From assembly GCA_025201805.1 (NCBI GenBank), contig MU619322.1:99172-139750 (forward strand): a stretch of 40,579 bases of DNA, given 5' to 3'. Shown in pieces: positions 2,783 through 12,695 of this stretch. Each line of letters starts with the position of its first letter. The stretch's first letter is position 1. The notes below the pieces were generated by a model, which made no database searches, was not told the DNA's origin, and saw only the letters and a list, made by a program, of their open reading frames with translations. A program made the position numbers and the translations under genes. Origin of the DNA: Parasitella parasitica NRRL 2501 (taxonomy: Eukaryota; Fungi; Mucoromycota).

Positions 2783-5413
2783 ATGAGCGATAACGATGGG
2801 GAACTGAAAAGGTCTCAAGAGCCAGTTGAAATTGTTTCAACAGTTGAGCATAAAAAGCGAAAGACCAACAACGACCAACAGACACAGAAACAAGTTCCCC
2901 TTTTGCCCACAACTCTGGTTCTTGATAAAGTTCAAGAAGAAACTATAAATGATTTAGTCAAAAACAGTAATGCAGCCGCTTCACTACTTCAACGAAGCAC
3001 AGGTAAGTAGTGATCATTTACGGCATGATAACCTACCATATGAAAATGACACTTATTTGTATTTATTTATAGAAACGACGAATACACCAGGGAATTGTAA
3101 GTATATGGATTTTTTTATCCTCGAGATATTGCAATTAACATCTTTTTTCAAAGCAGCAGCAGAAACAAAGGACTCTAGTGATACAGTAGCAACGGAAACA
3201 CCATCAGCAGATGCAACCAAGGCGGTCACAGCATTATCAGGTATTTAACTCATTCTCAAAGCACATCCTATGTCATGCTTACATTTTTGTCCGCAGGGAA
3301 TGAAAAGACTGAAGAGATTTCTTTGTCCATAACTAGTGAGCAATTGTTATTTGCACTTACGTCTGTCCCTTCGTCTGAGAAAGAGGCAGAAGAACAGCAA
3401 GAAAAGTCCACAAAAGAGAACATTGATGCAAATCAAATTAAATCTATTACCGACAATTCGACAACAATAATGGAGGTTGCCAATGCGCCACCTGTCCCTC
3501 AACCCAAAGTGACATCTCCGCCAGCAGTGCCCACCTCAACACCATCTAACCTTGGAATTAGCCCTAAAAACATTCTACGTCCTTCAGAAGTATCAGTCGC
3601 TTCAACAACTCCAAATCCTGCTGTTTCTGAATCTGCAATCGCCCCAATTATAACTACAGCAACAACAGCATCTATATCACCATCGGCACTACCGCAAACA
3701 TCTCGAACCAATGACAATGCAAAAACCTCAGCATCTATACCTACCACTCTTCGAAAAGCCAATATCAGCAACAATAATAATACTTCTTCGACGGCTAATA
3801 GCCCATCCCTGTCCACAAGTGCGACAGCATCGGCTTCCAGTTTGGCATTTAGCAACCTACCAGATATTAGTGCAGCATTACGCCGTCTAAGTAGCACAAA
3901 TCCGTCTGTGATCGAACAGCTTTCATCCTCTCCTCGATTATCGTCGCACTTGAATGATCGTAAAGGGTCGTCTGTTGAAGCATCTCCTTCTGAAATTCTA
4001 GGGAATGCTTTGGCAGCTGTGGCTGCTAATGCAGCAGCACGATCCAACTCTAATAACTTGATAGCATCACCTAAACAACAACAGCAAAATGTAACCTCAT
4101 CAACATCATCAGCAGCAACATTAAATAACAACACTAACTACGGAGGTAATAGCAACAATACACAGACCACAGCAACAGCGACAGCAACAGCCATAGGTAA
4201 TTTAGCTGCTTTTACAGCAAACATTAGTAGCCTACTTAATTCTGGTGGATTTCATCGTAATTCATTCAGCCAAGAGGATACACAAAAACTTGCAGCTGCA
4301 GTAGCTGTTGCACGTAACCCTCAACAACGGCGCAAAAGCTCCATACAGGTTATGGGTAATGCATTTTCTAATATGATTGATCAAGCTATTTTGATGGGAA
4401 GAAATAAAAGCTTTAGTGAAGCTGCTAATAAACCTTTGCCGCCAACATCCAATACTAGTAATCCAACAGCGACATTGCCACAACCACCATCGTCGGCAGC
4501 AGTAGCAGCGGCAGCAGTAGCAACGCCTGTTGTACGAAAACCCAAACTCATAGTTAAAAATGAACAAGTTTGGAAATCAGTCGAGGGCATGGAAGAGAGA
4601 TCTCTAGGCTTTCAGCTGTATTCACCTCAGCTACTACTGCCCAATCTTGAAAGCAGCATCAATGGTCTGATGGAAATTCGAATACCTGCGCGGTTCTTGA
4701 CATTTGATAATGTTAAAGTCAAGAAAAAAGCCTTGTGGGGAACCGATATTTATACTGATGATTCTGATATTGTGGCCAGTAAGTTGAAGAGTTAGCATGA
4801 TTGTAATAATGATATTCACAATGTCCACAGTGGCCATTCATTCTGGCAAATATCAGCCTCAGTTTGTTGACCCTAAAATAGAAGCGACGGATCCTTTTGC
4901 ACTTGCTATAGCTGGCAAACAAAAGGAGTCCATGGAGGCAGCTAGACGATTGGCATTGAGCGGCAAGAAATATACACAGCATGATCAACATTTAATACCT
5001 GATCATGATTTAAAGGTGACTGTGCGCGTATTGCCAACATTGCAGCATTACTCTAGCTCGATTCGACACAAGTTAAAGTCAAGAGAGTGGGGTAAACATG
5101 ATGGTGTGAGTTTATATGTAAATGAAGTTGAAAAAATCAAGGTGAGCGTCGAGCATTGTTGTGAGGTTCCAGGTTACTTAATAGTTTGCAGAAGGGAGAT
5201 GCTCGATTAAAAGGTCGCAGTTCCATGAAATCTAATATGTTTGCTTACGAGCCCTACCGAAAACAAGCTTTGGGATCACATCACAACAAGAAATCATGTC
5301 CAACATCCACCATCGCATTGCCATCCACTCAAAAAGGTCGCATCAAGAAGTCTAAAAGAGTTTTGCGAATGTTTCAGGTACCTGTAGAGTTAAAACCCAC
5401 TAAATCAGCATAG
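2783..5413 (+). CDS. Rxt3-domain protein (Rpd3L histone deacetylase complex subunit-like), multi-exon, long low-complexity N-terminus
   Basis: Motif IRIPARFL...LWGTDIYTDDSDIVA|VAIHSG...DLKVTVRVLPTLQHYSSSIRHKLKSREWGKHDGVS typical of Rxt3; GT-AG introns join ORFs 2783, 3275, 4797 and 5186. Confidence 0.85.
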
Positions 5414-10336: not shown

Positions 10337-10570
10337 TTTGAGGTATAAAGAAAAAGAGGTTATTTCCTACATTTCTCATCTATTGTAGAAANNNNNNNNN
10401 NAAAAAAAAAAAAAAAAAAAAAAAAAACTTGGATTAGTCTAGTAATTAATCACTCAAGTAATATACAAAATGATTATGCCATCCAAACATGCTGGCTCAA
10501 CCTGATGGTTTCCAGATTTGATCTCGGTTCTGTGGTTTATTTTGCAAAAGTTATAACCAAACGACTATTA

Positions 10571-12164
10571 AGAGCATCTCCAACGGAGGTGCTAATTTTA
10601 CAAAATTTCCAAAAGAAAATTGGTGAGAGGATGATACTTTCTTTTTTTTTTTTTTGGACAATTTTACTCACCTGTAATGGTGTATAGGATAAATCGAATA
10701 CCCATGGCGTATCAAAGAGTAATATCAATGACACACAATGCTTGCAATTATTCTTTTGATTCAGAACGCTGGAATGGTGAAAGACGAGCGTCATTGTTTC
10801 TTGCTGCATGTAAAAATATGTTGAGGATGTTTTTTTGCAGCCATCATATCGCAATTCCAAATAATATTATAAGCGGTTTCTTGACACTGTAATATAGAAT
10901 GTACTCTTCGCTTTGCTGATCGTTGCACAACGTTTTCAACATTTCTTTTTTCGCAGTTGTTGCAGACTTGACTGGTGAGGTATTCGTCTAACATTTGGAC
11001 TGTAACACCACGATTTTCTTTACATTTTTGAAGAGCTTTTATGATAGTCTTTGTAGGTCCAGATCTTTTGCCTCTCATGGTAGGTGAAAATCTTCCATCT
11101 CCATAGGCAATGATGGTTTTATTTGCCTTAACTGATCCATCAAGTGGTGGAGGGCGGGAGTAAGAATTGTTGTTTCTCGTTGTTGTCTTCACATTGGTGG
11201 ACGCACCCGTACGATATTTGATGCTATCATGAGTAAACATCTTGACTATTTCGCTGAAGGCTTTTTGCTTCTTTCTATAACATCTAAACTTTAATTTTGA
11301 AGACCTATTCCATTTGGTTAACACATTTTTAAAATATGTACGAGAGTTTGCTACACTTACCAAAGGCCTCTGTTATAAAATTCATACATTGTATCGTAGG
11401 ATTGTATACACTTTCTGCAAGCAATCAAGAATTTTGAAACTTCTTCGGTTTTTAATGAATCCAGTTCTGTTATCACTCTATGAGTGTTTGTGTGCTTCGC
11501 TTGATGAATCTTTCGAATGTGAGCTGCATCATTAAACCCACACAGTGATAATACTCCTTTTGACTAAGTGATCTCACTCTACCAGCTTGGTCGTCTATAG
11601 TAAAAACCGTGCTAATTCCAGGGTCTACCACCCACACTTGGCACCCATTGTCAATATCTGTTTTCAGGTCAGATGGCTTTACGGGAAGAGAGTCTTTCTT
11701 CTTTTTTGCTGTAATTCTTGAGAAGACAAAAGAAACTGAATAACCATCCGTGTAGATAACATTCCTAATATAACTTGATAAGTTCTAAGGCATTACTAAA
11801 TTAAAACTATATGAACTTACTTAAAGATCTTCTTTCCATTGTATAAAGTTTAACTAACTATACAAACTTTATTAACATTTTCTAAAATGGCCAGTACTTC
11901 TGTTCTGAATGCTCATCTTAATGTTAAAAGTGTGAGGTTTATAGTATGAAATATATAAAAGTGGGTTGAATAAAAGTAGTGAGCACCAGCTCCTGTTTTG
12001 AAAGTAGAACGACTTTGCAGAAAGAAGAAAAGATAAGAATAAAATAGTAAAAGAGAATACAATGGATTCAAGAGCCAAGGGAGTAATTCAAAGAGCTTCA
12101 GAGACAGAAAAAAAAGGGATGCTTTAAATGGCTTTTTGTTTAGCATCTCTGTTGGAGATGCTCT
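10571..12164 (-). mobile_element. Non-autonomous TIR DNA transposon (PIF/Harbinger-like termini) carrying a Fanzor gene remnant
   Basis: 25-bp TIRs at 10571-10595 (AGAGCATCTCCAACGGAGGTGCTAA) and 12140-12164 (reverse complement AGAGCATCTCCAACAGAGATGCTAA), 23/25 identical. Flanked by TA on both sides (or TAA/TTA if the TIR starts at GAGC). No transposase inside. Confidence 0.85.
10748..11850 (-). pseudogene. Fanzor1 (eukaryotic TnpB-like RNA-guided RuvC nuclease), N-terminally deleted and frameshifted
   Basis: Reconstructed: FKNVIYTDGYSVSFVFSR...VWVVDPGISTVFT (RuvC-I)...EYYH/LCGFN...SLKT...KLKFRCYRKKQKAF...IAYGDGRF...LDEYLTSQVCNNC (RuvC-II plus Zn finger)...LQCQETAYNIIWNCDMMAAK/NILNIF...RLSPFQRSESKE*. 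Two 56-nt introns; frameshifts near 11545 and in the A-run at 10830-10836. Confidence 0.9.
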
Positions 12165-12695
12165 TATTTATCTAATGCTGTTAAGCTATGTTCATTTCTC
12201 CATGTATTTTCCTATTTTGTGAATTGCAGTTCCCGCTTTTTATAATTATGCCATAGATTTTTTGAATAAAAGCCCCTGAGAATTGTATACCGTACGCTGG
12301 GCTCAGTAGTATTTAGCATAAGTATATCATATAATTTTTGTTGGAAGCCAAAAGTTTATTTCATTTTCCTTGCTTTTTTTTAAAAAAAAAAAACAAAAAA
12401 AAAAGTGAAAAAACACATGTATCAAAGACATAATTCCGAGGGCTTCACTTTGTCAAAAGCAACCGGACTCAAAGTGCCTGACTTCTCTCACAGAGGTATT
12501 CCCATCACTTTATACAAAGATCAAAGAATCAAGACAACGAGTCACTCTTCAAAGATGTTACTACTCAGTAGACTCAAGAAATCTCCTCCCAACGGAGACA
12601 CGATACATTAGCAAAAGAAGATTTTTAGGCCCATGATACGACAACCGACTTGTGGGTTCTTGTTGTCGAAACCCTTCCTTGTTTATTATTTAGTA

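Follow-up and report, generated by a model that had tools for sequence, protein, structure and literature searches.

A transposon copy occupies positions 10572–12163 of the window (the whole stretch of 40,579 nucleotides that was analysed). It is flanked directly by TAA on the left (10569–10571) and by TTA on the right (12164–12166). If these flanking bases are included, the copy ends in inverted repeats of 27 nt each (10569–10595 and 12140–12166) that are complementary at 25 of 27 positions (93%). An initial annotation of this DNA had described 25-bp terminal inverted repeats (TIRs) with both ends preserved, and the repeats of 24–27 nt that we find agree with it. The TIRs within the element are 24 nt long and lie at the 3' end of the gene that it carries (10572–10595) and at the 5' end of that gene (12140–12163). 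Besides being complementary to each other, they share a 24-nt core, GAGCATCTCCAACRGAGRTGCTAA, that has 61 matches in the 32.8-Mb genome versus none for the reversed control. Each terminus is also a near-perfect palindrome, with a stem of 9–10 bp and the loop AAC; the repeat next to the gene's 3' end reads GAGCATCTCC-AAC-GGAGGTGCT. Because the core is self-palindromic, either end of the element is able to fold as a hairpin. The assembly has a gap of 10 Ns followed by a run of about 25 As at 10393–10427, which is 140 nt upstream of the element.

On its minus strand, the element carries ~320 codons from the C-terminal part of a Fanzor1 (TnpB-like) nuclease, interrupted by two 56-nt introns and by two 1-nt frameshifts in homopolymers. 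The gene begins with a remnant of the 5' untranslated region or promoter (11876–12139), which matches positions 3281–3559 of locus L031, upstream of the ATG. (L031 holds a full-length copy of the element, and we use its numbering for the intron joints below.) The next segment (11821–11875) combines the stub of an upstream exon, about eight codons ending in YNGKKIF, with the junction of a 1.76-kb deletion and about 33 nt of filler. Intron 1 (11765–11820; GTAAGT...ATTAG) separates this stub from the middle exon (11361–11764), which encodes the end of the WED domain and RuvC-I. The middle exon includes the motifs TDGYSVS (11731–11751) and VVDPG (11617–11631), whose aspartate codon is at 11623–11625. 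After intron 2 (11305–11360; GTAAGT...AATAG), the last coding exon (10748–11304) encodes DEYLTSQ (10968–10988), with the RuvC-II glutamate at 10983–10985; CNNC (10953–10964) and CQETAY (10869–10886) of the zinc finger; and WNCD (10848–10859), with the RuvC-III aspartate at 10848–10850. The stop codon in the family's reading frame is at 10748–10750. All of these features are on the minus strand. The three RuvC acidic residues are thus kept, as was TDGYSVS, and the aspartate of VVDPG is exactly where the initial annotation had placed it. The zinc finger that it reported is present with three of its four cysteines, but the fourth ligand is changed from cysteine to tyrosine in this copy (10869–10871). 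The annotation had also proposed that a C-terminal protein of ~330 amino acids could be reconstructed. When we joined the two exons in the family's majority reading and translated them (for stop counts and codon positions), we found no stop in 319 codons.

The 3' untranslated region (UTR) runs on the minus strand from the family's stop codon to the TIR (10596–10747). It is conserved even in L075, a sibling with a Harbinger transposase, and the window copy has its own expansion of 4–5 As at 10651–10655. A third intron lies in this region (10592–10671, minus strand; GTGAGT...TTAG), with its acceptor inside the TIR. It is 80 nt long in the window and 76 nt long in L031 (316–391). For this intron, the joint 315->392 (with CT..AC ends) was seen in two contigs, from run X7 only, which is presumed to be RNA. 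Its removal would place the conserved hairpins of the 3' end next to the final 20 nt of the element. The joints of intron 1 (1441->1498) and intron 2 (977->1034) were likewise found in X7 contigs only and were absent from the DNA run X1. These observations fit the splicing of all three introns in transcripts of the family, given that X7 is only guessed to be RNA.

To describe the damage, we aligned the window copy with 14 sibling copies, and we found exactly two coding indels. Immediately after the EYYH codons, the middle exon has lost one T between positions 11545 and 11544, which shifts the frame by -1, and one A was gained in a run in the last coding exon (10830–10836), which shifts it by +1. 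As both indels are in homopolymers, they could be assembly errors. Two substitutions, the C>Y change of the zinc finger and an R>C change (NRD to NCD), affect columns that are at least 90% conserved among 60 relatives, and both count as damaging. The R>C change was seen in the window copy only; the aspartate of the motif is kept, and the sequence beyond it is frameshifted. Furthermore, the N-terminal REC/WED half of the protein is absent from the window, as the deletion removed the equivalent of positions 1522–3280 of L031; L031 itself retains this half in a frameshifted state. From these lesions we infer that the window copy can make no nuclease and can provide at most its ends plus a transcript. 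As a nuclease gene it would have no function. The initial annotation had called the copy dead because of a deleted N-terminus, two 1-nt frameshifts, and probable NRD>NCD and zinc-finger changes, and each of these was borne out.

Relationship to Fanzor1 nucleases

To classify the protein, we compared its exons and pieces separately. With the Pfam model PF07282 (Cas12f1-like TNB), the 190-aa piece from the last coding exon scores 24.4 bits, which is under the cut-off of 26.3 bits; its fourth cysteine is a tyrosine. The same model gives 36.9 bits for the sibling L031 and 31–41 bits across siblings and relatives. Searches with single pieces against the sequences in the PDB found nothing relevant, so profiles were needed. 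Profile A1 covers the C-terminal piece and was built from the window copy (first row), its siblings, and members of three further families in this genome. Its best matches in the PDB are SpuFz1 (3e-5), GtFz1 (7e-5), and PpFz1 (2e-4), followed by TranC, Fanzor2, TnpB, and Cas12. Among 1.8 billion representative proteins, A1 matches 2946, and the full-length matches all carry a TNB domain above the cut-off. All pieces of the family's full-length copy align collinearly with one relative, the 863-aa protein P0012 from Rhizomucor pusillus. We combined 16 full-length relatives with pieces of this family into profile A2, which matches SpuFz1 over nearly its whole length (1.2e-51), and also GtFz1 (7e-42), PpFz1 (1e-33), Fanzor2 (1e-9), and TnpB (3e-5).

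Structure prediction gave a similar picture. With an AlphaFold model of the window piece (pLDDT 73), the top seven fold matches in the PDB are Fanzor1 structures, and Cas12 relatives come next. In A2, the column of DPG hardly varies, and it is aligned to VIDPNKRD of SpuFz1. In DEYLTSQVCNNC, which aligns with LLDEYKTSSVCPRC of SpuFz1, the glutamate is followed by six residues and then by the first cysteine of the zinc finger. Fanzors are set apart from canonical TnpB by such a placement of the RuvC-II glutamate, about six residues ahead of the zinc finger (PMC13565253). Overall, these profile and model comparisons show a Fanzor1-like protein remnant that is closer to the solved Fanzor1 proteins than to Fanzor2, TnpB, or Cas12. 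This upholds the Fanzor identity proposed in the initial annotation, which had named profile and structure searches as a check.

The best match by both sequence and fold is SpuFz1, the Fanzor1 of Spizellomyces punctatus (PDB 8GKH and 9CEU–9CEZ; PMC10432273). It shares the motifs I.TDG, DPG, DEY.TS..C..C, and WNRD with the family, and it also sits in a transposon with TIRs. However, the two are only ~20–25% identical. The family is distinguished by its protein of ~816 amino acids, its three introns, and its TWA target sites and affinity to Harbinger elements, and the window copy is a truncated pseudogene. A Fanzor1 from Parasitella parasitica itself, PpFz1, has already been solved (PDB 9CF0–9CF3); it cuts DNA with a 5'-ATN TAM, and its FRI insertion binds cyclophilin (PMC11423790). 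PpFz1 thus shares the host species, the protein class, and an AT-rich TAM with the family. We rejected the idea that the window family is PpFz1, which scores 2e-4 with the C-terminal profile, is ~19% identical in the fold alignment, and belongs to a distant family. The TnpB of ISDra2 and those of IS200/IS605 elements have the same core of RuvC and TNB and a guide RNA at the 3' end of the gene. Their match to the family is limited to the C-terminal zinc-ribbon region (3e-5), and the RuvC-II glutamate of canonical TnpB is about 50 residues before the zinc finger, versus six residues in the family. Also, TnpB genes are without introns, TIRs, or duplications, whereas the family has all three.

Copies of the element and their putative transcripts

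We saw only one full-length copy of the element (C70:62495–66149, or L031 296–3950). It is 3655 bp long, and the family's protein of ~816 amino acids is derived from an element of this kind. The sizes in the family are 0.6, 1.5, 1.9–2.1, and 3.65 kb. The deletion junction of the window copy is also present in C122, in C74, and twice on C50, at other loci with other flanks, which implies that the deletion derivative transposed after the deletion arose. The derivative has thus reached at least five loci.

Over 1267 nt, the window copy is 1.3% diverged from the family majority (1.4–5.9% for the other copies). The family is probably fairly young by this measure, and the initial annotation had suggested the same from the few lesions and the near-identical TIRs. 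Substitutions among the family's copies are spread evenly over the three codon positions, with 79, 78, and 82 singletons and 15, 14, and 17 shared changes, which implies that the copies decayed neutrally. By this test we detected no selection on the protein among the family's copies.

The annotation had further supposed that an intact master copy exists, which the assembly does not support. No intact copy of the nuclease gene was found in it: the reading frame of the copy in C70 is broken in at least five places, and the other candidates are cut by runs of Ns. We discarded some long "open frames" from the genome search (up to 1266 amino acids) because they are due to runs of Ns and are not intact genes. 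At four of the frameshift sites in C70, a base is added or missing in contigs from the runs, and a better, less damaged copy may therefore exist. The depth of the DNA run indicates few copies of the N-terminal region versus some tens of ends, which suggests that full-length copies are rare.

A possible guide RNA from the 3' end deserves separate consideration. The omega-RNA scaffold would lie in the 3' UTR (10596–10747), as it does in known Fanzor1 loci. No part of the family is shared more widely than the TIR and the 3' 230 nt, and both are intact in the window copy. This raises the question of whether the window copy, although dead as a gene, is transcribed and supplies an omega-RNA with a locus-specific guide in trans to an intact nuclease of the family. 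Its closeness to the family majority would suit such a role, and so would a contig from X7 (joint 1521->3317) that carries the window-type deletion junction with near-identical filler. But 2 of the 33 filler letters in this contig are not those of the window, which makes a sibling copy its source. The evidence for RNA structure is weak as well: the fold of the 3' end has a z-score of -1.98 and just one covarying pair. As we also saw no intact nuclease gene in the family, we consider a guide role in trans to be rather improbable, and a dead copy that contributes at most its ends and a transcript is the reading that we prefer.

The carrier transposon and its target sites

To identify the type of transposon, we compared the flanks of 17 TIR-bounded copies. 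The 3-bp flanks are identical (TAA/TAA or TTA/TTA) in 12 of them, including all four of the MITE-like 0.6-kb copies. Among the 12 Fanzor-bearing pairs, eight have identical TWA flanks. A model with symmetric TA flanks fits just four of these 12 pairs and none of the four MITE-like copies. The non-identical flanks are those of the window copy (TAA/TTA) and of four other pairs. Beyond the duplication, the sequence tends toward ATT|TWA|AAT, which is a roughly palindromic and AT-rich target. The flanks of the window copy by themselves fit two readings, either TA plus one base or a 3-bp TWA. The TA flanks of the initial annotation can therefore still be read there, but a 3-bp TWA fits most copies better, and we take the TAA at 10569–10571 to be half of a TWA-type duplication whose opposite half reads TTA. 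A genome-wide search with the TIR, which the annotation had suggested, thus yielded Fanzor-bearing copies and a consensus for the duplication (TWA).

A sibling element links these ends to a transposase. It is 1859 bp long (C71:10963–12821) and has both TIRs, together with ~120 nt from the family's 5' end and ~280 nt from its 3' end (80% identity); the latter covers the final ~100 nt of the Fanzor open reading frame plus the 3' UTR. Its interior contains two relics that match PF04827 (Plant_tran; 78.8 and 75.5 bits), with DDE_Tnp_4 similarity and HARBI1-like relatives, and the transposase is truncated. A further TIR match, at C32:185333, has another Plant_tran match 1.2 kb away. We saw neither an intact Harbinger transposase between these TIRs nor an intact autonomous copy, and none of the seven DDE_Tnp_4 loci in the genome has a TIR of the family within 1.5 kb. 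A search for annotated Harbinger proteins of Parasitella, aimed at loci C98 and C32, returned only relatives from plants and metagenomes. The Harbinger-like carrier of the initial annotation is thus supported by the TWA duplications in 12 of 17 copies and by the transposase relic, but a complete transposase for it was not seen. Overall, we consider it probable that the family is mobilised by Harbinger transposase.

Fanzor1 genes have been described in several DNA transposon families of Mucorales (ROr, PBl, and MCi), and MCi-5 loci encode a Harbinger-type transposase (PMC3627910). MCi-5 was reported to be without TIRs and to have putative 6-bp duplications (ATTTAT), and its link to Harbinger was left open (PMC3627910). 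As far as the two can be compared by description only, the window family differs in having clear TIRs, a 3-bp TWA duplication, and a transposase relic in a separate sibling element. Given that the link made in 2013 was tentative, the TIRs, the TWA duplications, and the sibling relic appear to make this family the clearest case so far of a Fanzor1 that rides on PIF/Harbinger elements. The novelty that the initial annotation assigned to the nuclease was nevertheless overrated, since PpFz1 comes from the same species (PMC11423790) and the association of Fanzor1 with Harbinger in Mucorales dates from 2013 (PMC3627910).

The carrier might instead be of the Tc1/mariner type, with a TA duplication and a TIR that starts with AGAGC, and be moved by one of this genome's DDE_3 transposases. 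The flanks in the window can be read in this way (TA+AGAGC...GCTCT+TA), the genome has more than 130 DDE_3 matches, and Fanzor1 genes in Mariner elements are well known (PMC3627910). Moreover, at L032 (C2:171438–174944), which has the family's ends, the first 88 Fanzor codons run in frame into a partial DDE_3 gene. (This in-frame fusion may stem from template switching.) However, symmetric TA flanks are confined to four of the 12 Fanzor-bearing pairs, as described above. The DDE_3 sequence in L032 amounts to a 750-bp fragment that is 95.5% identical at the DNA level to copies in C74 that have other ends, and it shows that foreign inserts between the family's ends do occur. A DDE_3 gene of 439 amino acids at L033 is only 28% identical to that in L032; it is within a 9.4-kb interval between family-A ends, with a run of Ns inside, and it looks nested. 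On the pattern of duplications and the fragmentary, foreign nature of the insert in L032, we rejected a Tc1/mariner partner as very unlikely, and a Harbinger-type carrier remains our reading. We give almost no credence to the idea that the Fanzor fragment is a chance nested insertion in an unrelated TIR element: the MITE-like 0.6-kb copies and the C71 element do share these ends while missing most of the gene, but in ~20 TIR-bounded copies from different loci, Fanzor sequence has one constant orientation and register with respect to the asymmetric subterminal sequences, and even the C71 element keeps the end of the reading frame.

Proposed mechanism and other Fanzor1 families

Taken together, the segment at 10572–12163 is very probably a dead, internally deleted copy from a non-autonomous DNA transposon family of Parasitella parasitica whose cargo is an intron-containing Fanzor1 (TnpB-type) gene. 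We propose that a PIF/Harbinger transposase acting in trans would cut at the TIRs and that the element would insert at TWA within an AT-rich, roughly palindromic site. In an intact copy, the Fanzor1 protein would take up an omega-RNA that is transcribed from the 3' part of the locus and extends into the flank. Fanzor1 would then cut the emptied donor site, using a TAM that contains TWA and a guide from the 3' flank, and homologous repair of the cut site would restore the element. Such a cut-and-restore model has been proposed for TnpB and Fanzor generally (PMC13565253). It is unlikely, if a little less so than guide supply by the window copy, that an intact nuclease of ~816 amino acids, only distantly related to PpFz1, still acts in P. 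parasitica on Harbinger-type elements, with a TWA-containing TAM and a guide RNA matured by the spliceosome. In this reading, splicing of intron 3 would fuse the conserved hairpins directly with the element's final 20 nt and the guide in the flank.

These results add a well-delimited Fanzor1 family to a species in which PpFz1 has been solved. The family combines deletion derivatives that spread independently, neutral decay, and three introns that appear spliced in RNA-like contigs, the third with its acceptor inside the TIR. It could be used as a natural system to study how eukaryotic omega-RNA is made and whether Fanzor contributes to the persistence of DDE transposons.

The C-terminal profile matches the genome at least 94 times, and, not counting PpFz1, at least four Fanzor1 families are present in it. 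A second family (L049 at C25:19614–23421, with L047 and L050) has 45% protein identity to the window family, a 3.8-kb element, and TIRs of ~190 nt. It is much less damaged than the window family, with open exons of 357, 99, and 145 amino acids. Two further families are represented by L051 (C12), L048 (C9), L052 (C33), and L066 (C8); the open exons of the copy in C12 are 222, 262, 248, and 136 amino acids long.

Sequence similar to the element was also found in runs X8–X11, which are labelled as other organisms and contain 26–37% of the element's 31-mers. Contigs from X11 that are 90–99% alike cover most of the full-length element (L031 362–3417). No contig from X8 could be placed on it, although that run contains 37% of the sampled words. 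This signal could be due to related species, to mixed cultures, or to transfer by the mycoparasite. Lastly, at least nine pairs of identical DDE_3 genes are inverted and 5–9 kb apart (in C74, C29, C30, C25, C128, C46 (two), C66, and C4), and these pairs look as if they frame larger composite units.
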